Source of the DNA: Bugula neritina
Taxonomy: Eukaryota; Animalia; Bryozoa
Direction: 5' to 3'
Assembly: GCA_964035545.1 (NCBI GenBank)
Contig: OZ037765.1
Span: 22,133,504 to 22,197,503 of the forward strand
Length of the DNA: 64,000 bases
Below the pieces are notes generated by a model. It did no database searches. It was not told the DNA's origin and worked only from the letters and a program-made list of their open reading frames with translations. Shown in pieces: positions 20,505-55,131 of the stretch (positions within the stretch are counted from its first letter, which is position 1; the number at the start of each line of letters is the position of its first letter). Both the position numbers and the translations under genes were made by a program.

Positions 20505-23460
20505 CATCCTGTCCGTCATTTCGTCTGGTAGCTCTGAAGTTTAGAAGACATTTTTGGCATTTAGAAAAGTGGCTGGTCTTAGATGTGCCTTTTCGTCCTG
20601 GTCATATAATGTTGATTTTCCTACTAAAATTATTAGTATTTATACATTTTAAGTGATGATAGTATTATTCACTAGACATAAATTCAGCATTTTATCAACA
20701 GTAATTAACAAATGTATGCTATAGCTGTAAATAGCTCAGCGTTTTAGTCTCTATTTTTATATTGAGTATGTTGAGAAGTAGATCAGAAATTTTGCTGGTG
20801 CTTGAAATATTGGACTATTCGAAAGTGTTATTTCATAAATTTGAAGTTCAGAACTATAATATTATTTGCTATTTATATAGTTTGTATATAATTTAATGAT
20901 GCAGCTAACTGCATGCTATTAACCAACTAATAAAATACTGTACATATACTATTAGCACTCTTGTGATTCTGGGGCGTTTGTTAATTCCACAGACTCAACA
21001 GCTCTTAAACATTAACAAAAGTAAACTTACTTTACTTGGCTTGAACTCTACTTATGCTTTTGAAATTAATAATAAAGTTACCTTTTTATTTTCTCTAATA
21101 TTTACTAATTATCTAGCAATAATATACTATCGAATTACTAAATAATAAATATCTTTATATTAAACTTATTTAACTTGTAACTCTTGCTTTTTTCAGTTTG
21201 CTTGCTGCATAATTTTAAACCTAGCAAACTTGTAAGTTGACCTATGATTGACTAGGTGGCTATTAATTCTGCAGTCTTATACCCCTTACCCTGACTTCTA
21301 TAACCTTGGGGGCTAAAACTCACGGCAAATAATGTTGATGATCTTAAATTAACAAATTTTGGCAGATTACTTTGCAGGAACAGAGCTTTTTCTGCTTTTA
21401 TTTTTAACTTTTTGGTCTTTTTTCAAACTGCAACTATTTTATTTTCAAGCAAAGTATCTTTAATTACTGAAAACAGGGATCTAAATAACTTACTCATCCT
21501 CTTACATAAGAGAAGGCAACTACGAAAGATCAAACTGATACATAATTGAAAAATGAACACACTTCTGTAACTGAGCTCTATCTACAGAAAGCTGATAATA
21601 AAGCTTCTTGAAAATTTTACTTGTGCTGGCAAAACTAAATAATAGTAGAACCATCTGTTGACGTGAAAATATTTTCGTAATAAACCGATCAATGCAACAG
21701 TAACTATAGTTAAGAATAAGGGTTTGTTTGGAAAGTTTAATAAGTACTGCAAATGACTTTACAAATATTTATCCTTTGGCCTATGCAGTGAAGAAGTAAC
21801 TAGAAAGGTAATAACTTTTAGAAGATGTCAACACTTTTATATATTACAGTTATACCCAAGCAACTACATAACATAGGTTAGTTTCAGATTTACATGTATA
21901 ACACACCTGTTCAGTTTCACAATGAAGCTGTATACTACACATAGTTTCTAAAATTTATATTTTTTTTTATCATGGATAGGCATATGCAGACAATAGGCTT
22001 TAAAACTAACTATGGATCTTTTAATTTAAAAAAAAATCTATTGTTTATCCAGTGACTGGAAATAAAATGATTGTAATAGTTCATTTAGATAACAGCTTTT
22101 AATGTGAAATGAACTGCTTTGTTAAGTAAAATAACTAAATTTTTAAGTTTAATAAGTTTTCAGCTAATTTTGTGTTTAAGGTTTTAAAAAAAATGCAATT
22201 TTTTCTTAGCATTTAAGTATTTTTAGCCACATTTCTTTGCTAAACTCGTGATGTAATAAGATTAATTGTTACTATAATGATGATAAATTATAATTCCTTC
22301 AGTATAACAGTAAAGCCTATGCAAGTCAAACTGCTAAGACTGTTAAGCTTCCATTAAGGCTGAATCCATTACTTCCCATCCTATTATATAATGTTTTAAT
22401 ACAGTATTTCCTGTGGGTTAATACTTGCTAGTACCAAAGACTGTAGGTGGTACCAGCATCAAATATGATTGGGTTCTGCATATGATTGTAATCCAGTGAA
22501 CATTTCATCCATTTGCATATCAACTCTTATTATAAAGTGGAACTTTACATAGGTTGTGGATGAAAATGGCACATTAAAAAGTTGGTGTAAAAAAGAAACC
22601 TCGAGTAATTAAGTAAAAACATACAGCCACTACCTGCTATTAATAGTTGGTCACTATTACATAAAGCTTCGCCTTTCTATCTTAATCTCTAGAAAAAAGA
22701 GTGTAAAAGGCATTAATTCCCAAATTAGTCAAACTAGTAAGTTTTAATCCCTCCAAAAATATGAATATTCATACTGTCATGTATAACTTCAGCAGTTGTA
22801 TTGCCACCCTAGATTCTGAGTATCTTTTAAATAAATCTGATTATAGCAATAAAAATTGTTTTAAACTTTAATAAAGGAGCAGGTTTTGAAAATCCTACTT
22901 TTAAAGACTTATTAACCGTTACGAATGTGGGCTATTCATTATTTGTTTAATTCACCTACACTTATATTGATTTGTCATGTAGTGACATACCATATGGCAT
23001 ATCAATGTGAATATTTCATTTTATATAAAATACAAATTTAGTTAATCATTATTCATTATGTAGTTTGTGGCCACCTCTAATCAGTGTTGCTCTTGTTTGC
23101 AATAAATCAACTTCAATGCTATGTTTTATATACATACGTTGTGGCTATGCACAGTTAATATTACATATCTAAGTTGAATCCTACGATCTACAACTAAACT
23201 TGCCGTATACGTGTACTTTATGATGCAAAATAATAGGACATTTCAAGCAATTCAGCCGGCCAGCCATTGGGCAGTAGCTAGGGGCGGTCATTGTCGTTTC
23301 AAAAGGAAGTGCATTCATCAACAATTAATAATTTATATTATTTAAATTACATTTAAATTTAATTTGACAATATAAAATATTCTATCTTTATAAAAATGTA
23401 AAATTAAAAATAATGTTAATAATTTTATTAAATATATAGTTGCTACTCCTTTACTGACCA

Positions 23461-23481
23461 CATTGGTAGTTGACCTATAAA
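23461..23481 (+). promoter_or_regulatory. Candidate core promoter of bZIP upstream module A (ATTGG and TATAAA)
   Basis: ATTGG at 23462 and TATAAA at 23476-23481, about 90 nt upstream of the ATG at 23570. Confidence 0.45.
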
Positions 23482-23569
23482 TTCGACCAGCGGCAACGTC
23501 TAATAGTGCGTAATTTGGTTATGTCGTAAGGTTGCGAAACAAAATAACTCACATACTTCTGAAGGCGTG

Positions 23570-25945
23570 ATGGAGTTTCTAACTTCAAATGGTCAGTCTG
23601 AAAGTCATGGTCAAGAATTCAACATGTTCTACTTCTCAGGTGGCAGTCCGATTTGCAACACAAGTTACGGTAAGTGTAGGTCACATTTAATTTTATATTA
23701 CGTAAAGTTATGTAACAACTATAGGTTTCTGTTCAGATTAGTGACTGTATCAGACGCCATTGCAATTTTCTTCGAGTGTTATTAAACTTTGGTTATATAA
23801 CATTATAATACACATTCCAGTAATATATTGAATATTGAACCTGGTCTCGTTATGTAATGTGATGTAATAGTTATTAGACGTACTAATACTATATAATACT
23901 AAGATGAGTGAGTACTTATTTTCTAACTTCTAGTCTATCTACTAGGTCTAGTAGCTCTGTCTCTAGTAACATTTGTGTTAGCCAAACGTATAACACATTT
24001 TTTTATTTTACCAAGTCACTTGTGTATAGCGGTGCTGTGAGTATATATTTCATCAAATTAAATCAATTATAAGTTTCTTTTTTAAAAATTGAATCACTAA
24101 AGTATATCAGATTTAATGGAGCATAGCCAAGACTTTAATCAAGAGCAAACAGTTTGTGCAATAAATTTGCATACTAATTTGAGTTTCTTACTGACAAGTA
24201 ACAAAATTATGAATTAAAAGATAAAATATAGTACATGTGATATTTTAGTTCACTTTTGTATTAGTTGCTAATTTAAGAATGGGGTAAAAATGAGGTTTTC
24301 TTGTTTTGAGGTACTGAGGCTTAGATTCATTTGGGTTTTCCAATCAAAACCTAATTTTTTTATTGTAAACGCTGATAACTTCTGGTGTTGCCTATATCCT
24401 ATATGACTACTACTAGTAAAGTACTATTAGAAAATTAGTCCCTCTGCCTAACTTACTGTTTTAGTTTTACTAGATCTGATTGGGCCAGTTAGCTAGTAAA
24501 AGTACTTATAGGAGTGGAGTTTTGTCAAACCTTCCTGTTCCTGGCGTCAGAGCTGAGCTAATAGTTTAAAATTATAGCTTTTAATAACAATCTTCGATAA
24601 TTTACCGTTTATTTTAGCTGTACTGGGTGTTGTAGAATCACTGGTACTAAGGTCTTTTGTGATTAGTATTTAGGCCCCTGTGTGCTATAGTAATGAATAG
24701 AAGAATAAGCTATTTTCTTGTAACTTTAAGTACTTGTTGTCTTGGTAATTATAGTGGACACTAAGGACTTTGTGTTGATTTTCTATAGCTTAAAATAATA
24801 TAAGCCAAGCTTTAAACAATGTTTATTGAAACTTAGTCTTATGGTGGTGATTTTTCCTGAATTTCTATGAATATTTAAAATAAACAACAATATCTAGCCA
24901 TTTATGATCTACAAGAATGGAAATGCCTTGGGTCTGAGTCCATTACACTAAATAATTCGAAGTTGTTTAAACTTTCTGGCCATTTTAAGCAACCAATTCA
25001 TGATTGCTTTCAGTAATCGTTACTTTCTCTTGTGAGCCATTGAAAGCTACACTGCTCTGCTTATACAACCCAACTACATTACATTTCTGGAAAACTCAAA
25101 AGCTTTTAGCTGTAAAAATATTTGCTTTATGTAAAATAGCTTCTTCATCAGTTAAGCTTAGTTTCAAAACCAAATTATCTGGCAAAAGTTTAATATTTGT
25201 CTTCTCATAGTTATTTTATCAACTTGACTTGTGGAAGAGAAGGCAATTCCTATAAGTCTGTAATTCTTGCTTATTTATGCAGGAGAAAGTCAATCGAATG
25301 AGCGTGATTCCCACAGCGTTTACACAGCTTCCGCAGAACTGAATAAAAGCACGGATTATGGCCTTCCTTCGTTGACAGCGTTCAGTGCATTCAGCTTCCA
25401 AGATGACCCAAAACCGATTGACCAGACTCAGTTTTCATCAATGTTGGATGATCTCAACCAGAATGAGCCGGATCTTGATCAGAATGAGTCTGCTGCCCCT
25501 TATTACCCAGGCCCTAAAACACCATCACCCTTTTCAGAGTCATTGGATTCGACTTCATCTCAAAGTACTCCTGAGAGCTTGTCACAATCCGTTCTATATT
25601 TAGAGAATCAGCTTCAGCACGCTAAGAACCCATCTACTAATGTTCCAAGTACCACTTGCTCATATATGAACATGACTCCAAGTGGGTCTCTATACTCACA
25701 GAGTACAACCTTAGGTCAAGCCTGGGCACAAACTTTTGCTCACACTTGGCCACAAGAACAGTCCCAAACCTGGACTCGCCAGCCTCAGACACACAGCTAC
25801 AGCTCTCCGCCAACTTATACTTCCGGCAACTCCTCAACTTGGTCAGCTCAGGGGGAGATCTGGCCTGCAGGCTTTCATGCAAACTCTTTCCAAAACTCAT
25901 CTCAGGGAATACAATCACCATCTTGCCAAGACCTGGATTTATCAG
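23570..25945 (+). CDS. PAR/ces-2-type bZIP locus, N-terminal module A (exons 23570-23669, 25283-25945); S/Q/T/P-rich, activation-domain-like
   Basis: ATG GAG TTT...TAC G|gtaagt, then tatgcag|GA GAA...TCA G|gtaaga. The 663-nt second exon is open and GC-richer. It ends in a phase-1 donor compatible with both downstream bZIP exons, giving 357 or 359 aa. Confidence 0.75.
23697..23868. promoter_or_regulatory. Cluster of PAR-bZIP/NFIL3 D-box sites in bZIP intron 1
   Basis: ATTACGTAAA (23697) abutting GTTATGTAAC (23707); GTTATATAAC (23792); GTTATGTAAT (23849) abutting GTGATGTAAT (23859). Consensus RTKAYGTAAY. Confidence 0.7.
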
Positions 25946-28125
25946 GTAAGAGTTCTCTTGCTTAGTCATTCAAGGTTGTAGCTGACGGTTATATGGCAAG
26001 GAATTTATTGAGCAACAAATATTTTACCCCTAATTCTAAGTTAAAAAAACTTTTTTTAACAATTTTCACACCAGTATTTTAATGTTGTACTAAACTAACC
26101 AAGTATTTCTTATGCCCATCTCTCGTATACATAGAGCTAGTTCTTTCTACACTAATTTGAAATAGCAGAGCCTGAAAACCATCTGCTGTATGGCTACATT
26201 TACTGTAATATTACTGTTCCATGAAGTTATGGCCATCAACATCAAACAACTATAATACCCTTATAAGATGGCCACCAAGATAATCGTAGCATAATAGTCG
26301 GCCATTATCTCTAACACAATGAAAATTATAGTGTCTAATAGTGCTTCTAACTGCAGGTAATACAATATTCTAGAGAACCATAATTTCCTTTAGCCACAAA
26401 CTAATTATTAAAGTGACCCACGGAACTGCTAGTGATATAATTCAAGTGTGTTGCCCAGTCAAGGCATTCATTTAACAGATGTGGTTTTATGCTTCAAGTG
26501 GAAAAGCCACAACAAAGGCTTGTACAGCCAAACAACTAACTTAGGAGGCGACAAAATGTAGAAGCCTAGGTTTTTAAACGTGCAATCAGCATCAAAGCTA
26601 GGTAGCTGATTACCATCTTCATAATAATTTCTCTTCTATTGCCAAGTTTCAACTGTGCATCTATTTATTACAGCCTGTAAAGTTTTCATAAAGAAATATT
26701 TTGCAGTTATAAAACCATAGCTTATTGTATGTTCGGCTGCGAATTTAATACATCATATTTCGCTGCAAAACTATGAAAGAGCTATATGTCTTTAGAGTTT
26801 AGGACAGAATGGTTGCAAAATACTCTGCCATTTATAGATAGCTAGTCTCAATTAAGATGAAGATAGAAATATTAAAGAAATGATGCTCCTTAGCTATACA
26901 TGTTGCGCTGTGTGAATTAAATTACTCAACTCCATTGATCTGGCACAAAAGTGTCCTAGTACTGTTTGCCAGTGACTTACATCCGGGTGTGTTTAGCCCT
27001 ATTCAGGTGTGGTTAGAAGACTTAGGGCTCCAGAACAAATTCACCCTTGAATTATCTGCTATATTTTAATGGATGGCATTTTTAAAAGTATTACCCGTTG
27101 AGTTTCTGAGTGAAAATGGAAAACTACCCTCTTATTTTTTGTTGTTTCTCAGAGCCTATACCTTGTTTACAGGTACTCTTGGTCCCTTATATTATCATCA
27201 TGGCGCCCTCAATGACCTGCTTACATTATTGGTTATCTCAATACCCCAAAGGGCCCCAAAAACCACAAAGTGTTTATTACTCATGTTTGCAGACTCCAAA
27301 TAATCTTTAAAAAAAGTATACAGTCAATGCCCGAGCATGTCCGCTAGTAATAGCAATTATTTATTTGCCTTTAGTGCATCATGTTTGGCATCAGCAACTA
27401 GCTCCGTCAAAATTAAGCTGAGTGACTGTTTTATTCATTTTTTCATTTAAAGTTATTATAGAAGTCTGACATGCTAAGTGAACACATTCTTTCAAACCGA
27501 TTTTCACAAATCTATTTTTACTGTATTTTTCAATTTTTCAACTTATTTCTAGGCAGCTGCCTTAATTTAATAGTTTTGAGTAAATTAGTCAGCTAGAATA
27601 GTGACGGAAAAACTCTAGTACTGAAGCTATAGTCAATAGCATATACATTATATGCAAATATAAATTATATGTACACACCCCCTACCTTGTGCTAATATCT
27701 TCCTTACTAGTTTTTAAGGCATTGACTGTAAAGTTATTTTTTAGTGATGCCAGCCAACCACTGCTTTTTGTTAAGGCCAATTCATATCTGCTTTTAGCAT
27801 TGGATTAGTCAATTGATTTACAACAATTGTGGTTAGAGATTATTGACTCTGTTGTATTGTTTTTGTTAGCCTTTCTCTGGAGTAGCTTCATTTCGCATTC
27901 AGAATTTTTGCATTACACAACATCCTATCAGCAGTGCTCAGTGGTTCATCTGGAATTATTCAGTTTAATAGTAGTAGGTAAAAAGCTCTGCCTCCATATG
28001 TTGTGACATAGGTAGAACTCGTTGACACTCTGGTGCTATAGTCATTCCTTAACAACTAGTAATCTCAACTTCTACATATCAGAGTATTATACAGACAAGT
28101 CAAGAACAACTGGTGCTGAAATTCT

Positions 28126-28133
28126 TATATAAA
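28126..28133 (+). promoter_or_regulatory. Candidate TATA box for the internal bZIP module B
   Basis: TATATAAA about 330 nt upstream of the ATG at 28460. Weak evidence in AT-rich DNA. Confidence 0.3.
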
Positions 28134-28459
28134 TAGTATAACTTAGTCAATCGCTACAAGATAATCTCGCAGTCATCCATTCCTACATTACCTACTGATA
28201 TCTGCAACTACTGAATATTCTGCAAGACTGTTTTCTACATTTGTTACTTGCCAGAAAAGAATAACTTCTAAAAGGAAGTTTGGTCGATGCTGGATCTCAC
28301 CGTTTGAGTATTAAGTTGGGACAATAATCTCTTCATGGTGTCTTTTTGCCGCATTTAAATTATTCACTCTATTTATCCTTCAAGAGGCGTTTATTGCCAA
28401 TATAGTATTACTTTCTGGGACTACTTTATAAACAGACGAATATTTAAATTATAATTACA

Positions 28460-29127
28460 ATGGATCCGACTCAATTTATGTTGCCAATGCCTTCAATGAT
28501 TCCTCAGTTTTTACCTACCATCCCTACCAGCACCTCTGCTGTCACTCCTGCCACACAGTTCAACACGCTGCCAATAGACATACTGGGAATGTGGGCTAAT
28601 GGTGAGTTTATTTCAACAGTTTACTATTTTTCAAAATCCATCTCTTAAGTTGACAATTATTTTTCTATTAAAAAAAACATAATATCTTAATTTCACCCAG
28701 TCGTCAAATTTTTAAAAAACTTGGTTGTTTTTGAAGAATTCTGATGATCAGTGGTGACCATATTCTCCAAATATCATACAAAAGTATAACTAGTTGAAAC
28801 ATCTCACTCTTTATAGGTACTAGCCCAACAGTTGCCAGAGCAATTGCTGCTGCTCAAAATCAAAAACGTCCTCGTAGTGAAAAGAAGCCCATCCCTAAAG
28901 ACCAAAAGGATGTGAAGTATTTTGAGCGAAGAAAAAGAAACAACCAAGCAGCTAAAAAGTCCCGTGATGCTCGTAAGGCTAGGGAAGATGACATAGCTGT
29001 TAGAGCAGAGTTTTTAGAAAAAGAAAATGCTATATTGCGAGCTCAAGCAGCAACTTTAAGAGATGAGGCCGTATCTCTAAGACTTTTAATTCAAGAAAGG
29101 AGGCAGAGGAGTATTCAGAGGAAATAA
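28460..29127 (+). CDS. PAR/ces-2-like bZIP transcription factor: start exon B (28460-28601) + terminal bZIP exon T1 (28817-29127), 150 aa
   Basis: [11 protein letters not shown]...WAN G|gtgagt joins ttatag|GT ACT in frame. T1 encodes [61 protein letters not shown], typical of the PAR/ces-2/giant bZIP group. AATAAA at 29161 and 29824. Confidence 0.88.
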
Positions 29128-30157
29128 CCTTCCTAGCTGCGCTATTGTCTGTTTACAGCTAATAAAAATACTGATGACTGCTGCTCGTAATAGCATTTAG
29201 CTGTCACTGTTGTCTATACAAGGATATTTATTTTTCATTGGTGGTGCAGTTAACTTCAACAGTATTTTCTTGGTTTTTATACATGGAAACAGTTATATGC
29301 AGTGCTACCTCCTATGAGATAACTAAATTATACAAAATCTGCTCTTATGGAGTCCATTATTTAAGTCAGAACACTGGTCACGTATACACAACATTGAATT
29401 TGAATTCCTTAATTTTTAAAGTATTTTATGCATTTAAATCATACCATTTTGATATTTGTTCATACTCCCATTTTTTTCAATTTTACCAAAGGTATTCTAT
29501 TGATGACCAGACCAGTACTGTCTCTCAAAGCTTGTATCTCAATTTGAATTTGTGAAGTTTTCTTAAACATTTGTACATAATTGTATGATATTGTAGTTTT
29601 GAATGAAACTGTTTAGTGTGATTGTTAAAGACTCATGCTGACTATATTGTGGTTTTATCTCTAATAATGCTTATGTATGTTTTATTATTTAATTTTATTC
29701 CCAATGTTATAAATTTTTTACACCTTTTAAGTTGTTGGTTCATGTATTAGCTGTTTAGCTATTTCTAATATCTATTTAACTTTGTTATAATTTTAGCTAC
29801 TTACACCCATAAAAATTTAAAAAAATAAATGTTCATTTTTTGAAATGCGGCCTTTCTAACTTTTTGTTCTACACAAAAAGAGGTAAACATCTAGATTCTA
29901 GCAGATGTATTGCTATATAACCCTTCCTGGCTTTCTTCATGCAATTGAGAAAGTGAAGCTAATGCAGCAAAATATTATATATTATTTTTTTAAAAAAACT
30001 CTTGTATACATTAATGTTTGGTGCACTATAGAGTTTTGATATACCAACAGCATCAGGGCTAAATTACAAAACAAATTAAAGGTTTTTTTTTCAATAAAAC
30101 AACCACTTGTTTTGAATTGCGGTAGTAAAAGGTTATAATTAATATACTTTTCAACAG

Positions 30158-30474
30158 GTAATAGTCTATCTGCTGCCACCTCAGCAGCTACCATCGAGCA
30201 AAATCAAAAGCGTACCAGAAGTGAGAAGAAGCCTGTCCCAGATGAAAAGAAAGATGAGAAATACCATGAGCGAAGAAAACGCAACAATGAAGCAGCTAAG
30301 AAGTCTAGAGATACCAAAAAATCTAAAGAAGAGGCGAATCAAACTAGGCTCGCTCAATTGGAAGCAGAAAACCAAATGCTAATGAGTGAAGCTTGTGTCT
30401 TGATTGAGAGACTCTCTACTCTTGAAGCTGAAATGCATCTTACTAGCAGTAAGCAAAATTACCAAGTTGTATAA
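30158..30474 (+). CDS. Second, duplicated bZIP terminal exon T2 (not in the ORF track)
   Basis: ttttcaacag|GT AAT... open to TAA at 30474: GNSLSAATSAATIEQNQKRTRSEKKPVPDEKKDEKYHERRKRNNEAAKKSRDTKKSKEEANQTRLAQLEAENQMLMSEACVLIERLSTLEAEMHLTSSKQNYQVV*. Same phase-1 acceptor and same N-terminal spacing as T1. Confidence 0.85.
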
Positions 30475-31604
30475 AATGCTGACACATCAGTAGCTAAATG
30501 CTGATACATCAGTAACTAATGACACATTGTGATAGAGTTCAGTCTAGGCACTTTTATTCTATGGCTAGATGCTATCCTATATCCCATCTCTGTTATAAGA
30601 GACATGTTATTACACTCATTTTAGTCCCACTCCTTCAAAGCACAAGTTTAATGCTCCAGATGATCAGTCAGTCAGACCTTAATTTAAAATTTACTGAATC
30701 CTCTCATTGTAACATATTTATTGACATTTTACCTTTCACAAAGTTTCTTGTTGTTTTTGACATAACTTTGCTCTTTAAAGGCCTTTTAGCAAGTTTTGCT
30801 GTCTAATTTGTACATTTATACTTACGAGTGAAACCTAAGTGATTGTGTATTCGAATGCTAATAAGTAGCAGTATAATGACCATTTACATGAAACCCTCAA
30901 AACTTTGATTAAACTGATACTGTATTAGTAGTTCTATGAACACATTTTCAGATCTACTATTTTTAAGTACAGATGATCAGACTAAATACAAATCAAAAAT
31001 AAAAGGAGCCAGTTATAACAGCTTTTTTCTCTTTCATGCACTTCCATCCAACTTCAATGACGATTCTAGCATATGCTTCAGGGTAATAAACTGCATAGAA
31101 ACTGTAATGCACGCCTCCATTACTACCAGCATCCACACAAAAACTTATAATTTATAGAAAATATGCTTTATTAACATTTAAACAACAGTTAATACAGCTT
31201 ATTATAGAAGTACAGAATAAAATGGGTTTTATTTTTTAAAACTTACTAAGGCCTATTTTCTTGTACACATGATGTAAAAGTCACAGCTTTTGATTGTCTA
31301 ATTTTTTGTTGTGAGATTTTTAATTTATAAAAAGAATACAATGGCATTACAAGTGCAGACCTCTATTGAAAAGATAAGGTGATAAAAAACTCACATCAGT
31401 GTTTGATATTCGAAGACAATATCAATTAGGTTTCTCTGCTTACTATACAAATGGTGTTATATATATTATATACAAAATACTATTAAAACATAATGACCAC
31501 TTACAATGATGAACCAGAACAAAAATAAATAAAATATACTGTACAAACTCTGTTAGAGAACTGTGAGTAATAAAATTATGCTTTACAAACTAGGAAGATC
31601 ATTG

Positions 31605-55131
<23,527 letters not shown>

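Follow-up and report, generated by a model that had tools for sequence, protein, structure and literature searches.

In Drosophila lola, mod(mdg4) and broad, tandem 3' exons encode different DNA-binding modules, and all isoforms carry a common N-terminal BTB region. TEF and Pdp1, members of the proline- and acid-rich (PAR) class of basic leucine zipper (bZIP) genes, vary the N-terminus on a single bZIP, and the two DNA-binding-domain exons of CREM share an upstream basic-region exon. PMC4787626, citing Foulkes et al. 1991 Cell 64:739, describes alternative bZIP exons in CREM (DBDI and DBDII) plus several promoters, which contradicts the remark in a first-pass annotation of the locus described here that no case of switchable bZIP exons was known. 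Host and nested genes form another described arrangement: mammalian annotations contain many same-strand nested genes, mouse and human have the two relative orientations in roughly equal numbers, and such pairs show an interplay through premature polyadenylation (PMC11694760). Here we analyse a bZIP locus in a 64,000-nucleotide stretch of Bugula neritina DNA (contig OZ037765.1 of assembly GCA_964035545.1; hereafter the window), in which two N-terminal coding modules, A (exons A1 and A2) and B, and two terminal bZIP exons, T1 and T2, follow one another in the order A1-A2-B-T1-T2. The best explanation, and one we consider probable, is that two paralogous bZIP genes are interleaved on one strand, with B-T1 lying inside the last intron of the younger, lineage-restricted A-T2.

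Each exon was translated and searched singly, and the lengths of the four conceivable products were obtained by adding exon lengths (Table 1). The combinations A-T1, A-T2, B-T1 and B-T2 are all open, at 357, 359, 150 and 152 residues, in agreement with the first-pass annotation, and the phase-1 donors of A2 and B meet the phase-1 acceptors of T1 and T2 in a split codon, G+GT, that specifies glycine in every combination. Its view that B is an independent start and not an internal exon of A is likewise borne out: read in the A frame from an acceptor at 28436, B runs into a TAA just before its donor, and an in-frame TAA lies five codons 5' of the B ATG. As had also been proposed, T2 has no start exon of its own, a scan of 28602-30157 having revealed no ATG-to-phase-1-donor exon with a usable donor; a stop codon stands seven codons 5' of the T2 acceptor. 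The intron between B and T1 measures 215 nucleotides, the one from A2 to T2 extends over 4.2 kb and contains the whole B-T1 unit, and the entire locus spans less than 8 kb.

Table 1 Features of the interleaved bZIP locus (window coordinates) and their nucleotide identity to the orthologous locus of the sibling lineage (L003). nt, nucleotides; UTR, untranslated region.
Feature	Position	Strand	Properties	Identity to L003
Promoter (putative) and 5' leader of A1	23440-23569	+	TATAAAT at 23476-23482, ~90 nt 5' of the ATG
Exon A1	23570-23669	+	100 nt, 33 codons (translated); ATG start; GTAAGT donor, phase 1	89%
Exon X, alternative non-coding leader in the A1-A2 intron	23925-24036	+	GTGAGT donor at 24037; in contig L021 as X + A2 + T2
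Exon A2	25283-25945	+	663 nt, 221 codons (translated); phase 1 at entry and exit	92%
Exon B, whole	27718-28601	+	5'UTR 27718-28459, then coding part; contigs L007 and L008
Exon B, coding part	28460-28601	+	142 nt = 47 codons + 1 base; ATG at 28460; phase-1 GTGAGT donor	99.3%
Terminal exon T1, whole	28817-29840	+	coding part, then conserved 3'UTR; AATAAA at 29824-29829
Exon T1, coding part	28817-29128	+	phase-1 acceptor; TAA stop	98.1%
T1 3'UTR	29129-29830			97.6%
Terminal exon T2 of the host, whole	30158-31008	+	coding part, then 3'UTR; AATAAA at 30998-31003; L021 runs to 31008
Exon T2, coding part	30158-30474	+	phase-1 acceptor; TAA stop	91.8%
Introns				87-92%

The pairing of these exons can be read from transcripts of a sibling lineage. 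The name B. neritina covers a complex of cryptic species, and an older draft, GCA_010799875.2 (PMC7576161), holds the orthologous locus (L003), which aligns colinearly to the window, introns included, with ~92% of nucleotides identical, and thus represents a close but distinct relative usable for tests. The splice evidence consists of open reading frames in a protein collection called on assembled public runs, that is, on complementary DNA (cDNA) contigs of this sibling lineage. The B>T1 join is present in contigs L007 (SRR4020085) and L008 (SRR4125604), which align to the window from 27718 or 27868 to 28601 and continue from 28817 onward with the 215-nucleotide intron removed, each carrying the uninterrupted 150-residue protein (P0120). 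The A2>T2 join is present in a 316-residue protein, P0235 (...SCQDLALS-G-NLSAATLAATSEQNQKR...QVV), a member of the 90% cluster of the A2 match. Its source contig, L021 (SRR4125604), is composed of 23925-24036, 25283-25945 and 30158-31008, with both introns removed at GT-AG sites, and because the flanks of the join share at most 4 nucleotides, a 31-mer assembler could not have made it without spanning reads. In the second run (SRR4020085), L007 ends 27 nucleotides into T2, and another contig, L018, begins with the CAG that lies 3 nucleotides before T2, sharing 30 nucleotides (k-1) with the end of L007. The start of L018 can be forecast from the end of L007: the end of A2 (...ATCAG) predicts that very CAG, and the end of B (...AATG) predicts a start 2 nucleotides later. 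This break in the assembly graph fits an A2>T2 join in the second run and supports it without proving it. L018 is spliced in the neighbouring ArfGAP gene too, so its run contains cDNA. As all splice sites are identical in the two lineages, we infer that both joins are also made in the window's own lineage.

No A-T1 or B-T2 product was found in the A2 search (121-385 residues), the T2 search (57-182 residues), the cluster listing or the representative library, and the contigs cross the competing sites unbroken, L007 and L008 at the T1 acceptor and L021 at the A2 donor and the T2 acceptor. These observations bear on the possibility of a true 2x2 gene, in which A and B would both be joined to T1 and T2 in regulated proportions, as in CREM/ICER, and which we regard as improbable. 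In its favour, all four joins are frame-compatible through the same glycine codon, CREM is a real precedent, and the T1 acceptor is closer to A2 than the T2 acceptor and its pyrimidine tract is the better one, which makes some A2>T1 splicing mechanically plausible; contigs, moreover, lose rare variants and cannot show absence, such that they set a bound on cross-splicing below which a minor amount may remain. Yet just A2>T2 and B>T1 were recovered, in two runs, evolutionary rates pair A with T2 and B with T1, and frame compatibility follows automatically from exon duplication. The first-pass annotation had left the choice between a 2x2 gene and a same-strand nested paralog; the two joins favour the nested paralog, and the combinatorial half of that proposal found no support in these contigs and proteins.

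Comparison with the sibling locus provided further support for two functional genes with fixed partners. The nucleotide change in A and T2 is close to the intron rate (89-92% identity), yet mostly synonymous. For A2, 21 synonymous and 15 non-synonymous changes give a ratio of non-synonymous to synonymous substitution rates (dN/dS) of 0.18 (p = 2e-6), and for T2, 14 and 9 changes, respectively, give 0.14 (p = 3e-5), with values of 0.04 in the basic region and 0.22 in the zipper; dN/dS for T1 is 0.05. Taken by dN, A goes with T2 (~0.03-0.04) and B with T1 (0-0.004). In the sibling, the frame, stop codon and acceptor of T2 are intact with a single 3-nucleotide indel, and the A2 indels, of 3 and 12 nucleotides, are in frame. 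The A2 and T2 coding sequences are under purifying selection, and the suspicion that T2 might be a dead exon duplicate is refuted by an exon that is intact and constrained in a close relative and is also spliced.

It is accordingly highly improbable that A, T2 or both are non-functional, representing a dead exon duplicate and transcriptional noise or an untranslated RNA. Such a view could draw on the intron-like divergence, on the non-coding leader of the sole A2 contig, on the lack of A2 homologues and on a 1-nucleotide frameshift in A2 of the NCBI draft, but it is at odds with the synonymous excess in A2 as a whole, in its first 52 codons and in T2, with the in-frame indels and conserved splice sites, and with the absence of the frameshift from other contigs. 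The frameshift is a 1-nucleotide indel in GCA_010799875.2 at ~12300 of L003 (window ~25863), which cuts the annotated model EB796_008776 to 258 residues lacking the bZIP. Because two independent contigs (L001/P0001 and L021/P0235) do not carry it, it is probably an error of the draft assembly, and one that probably hid the A-T2 gene from NCBI annotation. The A2 search retrieved a hypothetical Bugula neritina protein with 87% identity.

Both terminal exons encode intact bZIP domains related to PAR, NFIL3 and ces-2 proteins. T1 and T2 exceed the curated Pfam bZIP_2 cut-off of 22.3 bits, scoring 57.9 (E 1e-15) and 47.1 (E 3e-12), respectively, and share 54% identity over 80 residues; the closest solved structures for both are NFIL3 (E 1e-7 and 1e-8), the VBP zipper and C/EBP-beta. 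Each carries the basic-region contacts N-x2-AA-x2-SR and the PAR-type extension KD-x-KY-x-x-RR-x-x-NN, within an extended basic region, KDxKYxERRxRNNxAAKKSRD, that is also found in NFIL3, VBP and HLF; the T2 basic region reads KDEKYHERRKRNNEAAKKSRD. The zipper follows directly, with leucine at four consecutive d positions and asparagine at position a of the first heptad. The e and g residues differ, e positions being E,R,R,R in T1 and E,M,I,E in T2, and g positions E,Q,E,L and E,E,R,E. Because these e and g residues differ while the DNA-contacting positions are kept, A-T2 would be expected to bind PAR-type sites (TTAYGTAA) with partner preferences unlike those of B-T1. HLF, TEF and DBP have a PAR domain upstream of the basic region, whereas no such segment is evident in the B, T1 and T2 translations, read without a profile; for this reason, and because the orthologues are short ces-2-like proteins, we class T1 and T2 as PAR-related rather than canonical PAR bZIPs. 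No Pfam family matched A1, A2 or B.

The two genes differ in age. At the protein level T1 shows 83-86% identity with small bZIPs from other bryozoans, such as a 147-residue 'ces-2-like' protein of Watersipora subatra, and 70-78% identity with proteins of 100-180 residues from molluscs, annelids and arthropods, and the B-T1 orthologues in other protostomes are named ces-2-like, HLF-like or D site-binding protein. Judged by these sequence matches, B-T1 is the old ces-2-like small bZIP gene. The syntenic Watersipora locus is flanked by the same genes, TBC-RabGAP upstream of B-T1 and ArfGAP converging on it from the minus strand, but neither a T2-like exon nor a detectable A lies within 10 kb, and a contig of another cheilostome lacks T2 in the 2.1 kb 3' of T1. 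A-T2 was found in the Bugula lineage only. The search for T2 relatives (57-182 residues) returned only generic PAR bZIPs, at no more than 58% identity over most of the exon; its best full-length match, P0003, was rejected and adjoins trypsin genes on an unrelated contig.

Within its own genome the nearest paralog of T2 is T1, and T2 shares with bryozoan T1 exons both the motif QNQKRxRSEKKPxP and the exon phase. A phylogenetic tree leaves T2 unplaced on a stem of 2.75 changes per site, and a Bugula clade of T1 and T2 is not rejected (approximately unbiased test, p-AU 0.29). Most likely, T2 derives from T1. We propose that T1 was duplicated ~1 kb downstream and that the copy would then have been recruited as the last exon of a new unit together with orphan exons 5' of B. 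On this derivation, T2 inherited the phase-1 acceptor of T1, which is the only reason that all four combinations are open; the four-way frame compatibility is then a by-product of duplication and does not point to combinatorial design.

The nested gene is delimited by conservation as well as by contigs. Inside the host join 25945>30158 lie two conserved exon blocks of B-T1, 27700-28601 and 28817 to ~29830; the B exon block matches the sibling at 97-100%, and beyond ~29800, where the conserved T1 3'UTR gives out, the match drops to 78%. The cDNA contigs and the conservation profile place the 5' edge of the B exon at or before 27718, which moves the mRNA start upstream of the position near 28150 that had been assumed earlier. 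The contigs run past 29840, to 29979 and, for L007, to 30187, so the exact 3' end of T1 was not observed. The B-T1 UTRs (27718-28459 and 29129-29830) are 97-99% identical between the cryptic lineages, above most coding sequence at this locus, and the 5'UTR pieces 27805-27894 and 27998-28067 are ~80% conserved in Watersipora and in another cheilostome. Because this conservation is far above neutral, it suggests that B-T1 is under strong post-transcriptional control, and the retention of the 5'UTR pieces in Watersipora, where the A gene is absent, speaks for independent regulation of B-T1.

The 5' ends of L007 and L008 coincide with acceptor-like sites, TTTTTAG|G in the sibling sequence (27710-27719, where the window has AAG|G) and TTTTTGTTAG|CC (27860-27870). 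They could mean that the locus is one complex transcription unit, in which B-T1 mRNAs also start upstream, either within the A promoter region or from a different leader exon, and splice into ~27719 or 27870, so that two proteins arise through alternative splicing and alternative last exons. The sequence 5' of 27700 would be consistent with this, being only 86% conserved as against 97% for the A1 promoter block, and two conserved islands in the A2>T2 intron (26280-26640 and 27100-27420) could serve as leader exons. However, no contig contains a join into ~27719 or 27870, none of the four contigs contains an exon shared by B-T1 and the host, and B-T1 stands alone, with homologous 5'UTR pieces and without A, in Watersipora and another cheilostome. 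Nor would these acceptors extend the A protein, because in the A frame they reach stops after 8 and 45 codons. Overall we think a single unit quite improbable.

The islands themselves are 96-98% identical to the sibling, against ~90% for neutral sequence, and nothing in Watersipora matches them. They could act as enhancers, or as a promoter and leader exons of B-T1. A search of Rfam over 23000-32500 gave no match. An octamer-like ATGCAAAT lies beside a TATA-like ATATAAATTATA at 27652-27669, ~50 nucleotides 5' of the start of L007; the two are partly conserved in the sibling, and AT-rich sequence yields such matches easily.

Turning to the host gene, the block 23440-23575 at its 5' end is identical to the sibling at 132 of 136 positions (97%) compared with ~90% in introns, and its TATA box is kept. 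The A1 donor is identical in the sibling, both A1 indels are of 3 nucleotides and in frame, and A1 is included in the NCBI model EB796_008776 (P0002). The alternative leader X is preceded by TATATAAT at 23890-23897, ~30 nucleotides 5' of the exon, and this TATA box and the X donor are conserved in the sibling. In an mRNA with leader X, the A frame contains stops just 5' of A2, and three AUGs in other frames come ahead of the first in-frame one, from which a 275-residue product would result. The 52 codons of A2 that precede its first in-frame methionine nonetheless show a dN/dS of 0.06 (9 synonymous and 2 non-synonymous changes, p = 3e-5). Being under selection, these codons are translated, and therefore a coding start exon must serve some mRNAs; A1 is the candidate supplier of this start codon.

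The A2-encoded segment is rich in S, T, Q and W and has no known domain. A2 is present as a single copy in its own genome and no homologue was found among 1.84 billion representative proteins; two weak matches were rejected as multi-stretch low-complexity matches. This orphan N-terminus is probably an activation or regulatory region.

At the 3' end, L018 runs from T2 through its 3'UTR and into the final exons of ArfGAP/ankyrin, a convergent gene encoded on the minus strand (30475-32415), with an intron of that gene, ~31819-32248, removed. The 3' ends of A-T2 and of this neighbour probably overlap or abut.

Several points weigh against two neatly separate, nested genes. The A1>A2 join is seen in no contig, and the sole A2 contig (L021) opens with the non-coding leader X. 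L007 is unspliced from the T1 3'UTR into T2, and the B-T1 and A-T2 units may for that reason overlap rather than strictly nest. A leader may precede the B exon, and it might be one that B-T1 shares with the A promoter region, in which event it would be too strong to speak of two independent genes. The break between L007 and L018 could also come from a variant at the next base. The derivation of T2 from T1 is based on the shared motif, exon phase and adjacency, because the T2 branch is too long for the tree. Finally, all transcript evidence comes from assembled contigs of the sibling lineage, which give no expression levels, strand or tissue.

In order to rationalise the two interleaved genes at the level of the transcript, we consider the following arrangement. 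The first gene, B-T1, would be the ancestral small PAR-related bZIP of 150 residues, with two coding exons and long conserved UTRs, and the second, A-T2, would combine A1 or leader X with A2 and T2, giving 359 residues from A1-A2-T2. The short B-T1 intron may be removed first by intron definition, which would take the T1 acceptor out of the A pre-mRNA, and only those A transcripts that read through the T1 poly(A) site would reach T2. Because A transcripts cleaved at that site would be unproductive, the nested gene would attenuate its host.

A related suggestion, which we regard as possible but unlikely, is that the locus enforces splice-partner insulation between frame-compatible same-strand paralogs, or that a regulated breakdown of such insulation gives A-T1, B-T2 or both in some tissues or stages. 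At T1, the A2 donor passes over an acceptor that is both nearer and stronger, as well as a functional poly(A) site, for which prior removal of the B-T1 intron could be the explanation. Were the insulation to relax, the locus would be a conditional 2x2 bZIP gene, caught as a new gene forms around its parent.

Read as two interleaved paralogs, the locus offers a compact case of gene birth, in which a duplicated DNA-binding exon became the last exon of a new gene and the parent now lies nested within it on the same strand. It also provides a small system for exploring how a host transcript ignores a nearer in-frame acceptor and poly(A) site, and it cautions annotators that phase compatibility among duplicated exons is by itself no sign of combinatorial splicing. 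For bryozoan biology, it adds a PAR-type bZIP that is restricted to one lineage and has a changed zipper, next to a ces-2-like gene that is itself very conserved and whose UTRs are unusually so.

Compared with the systems described at the outset, the locus is not of a new kind. It resembles lola, mod(mdg4) and broad in its tandem DNA-binding 3' exons but lacks their shared N-terminus, and where TEF and Pdp1 attach a variable N-terminus to one bZIP, here a second bZIP exon has an N-terminus of its own. The likeness to CREM/ICER, as PMC4787626 describes it, extends to the tandem bZIP 3' exons and to a long activator-type N-terminus from an upstream promoter alongside a short, near-bZIP-only form from a downstream start. 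CREM, however, combines its promoters and DNA-binding exons, whereas here two fixed pairings are seen; and it belongs to the CREB subfamily, whereas these exons are PAR/ces-2-like, each containing a whole basic region and zipper. As in same-strand host/nested pairs, a complete unit, B-T1, sits in a host intron and the host must read through the nested poly(A) site. Unlike in those pairs, the intron is only 4.2 kb long, the last exon of the host copies that of the nested gene, cross-splicing would be in frame, and the host apparently formed around its parent. What distinguishes the locus is thus a host and a nested gene that are paralogs with frame-compatible exons, the host being the younger of the two.

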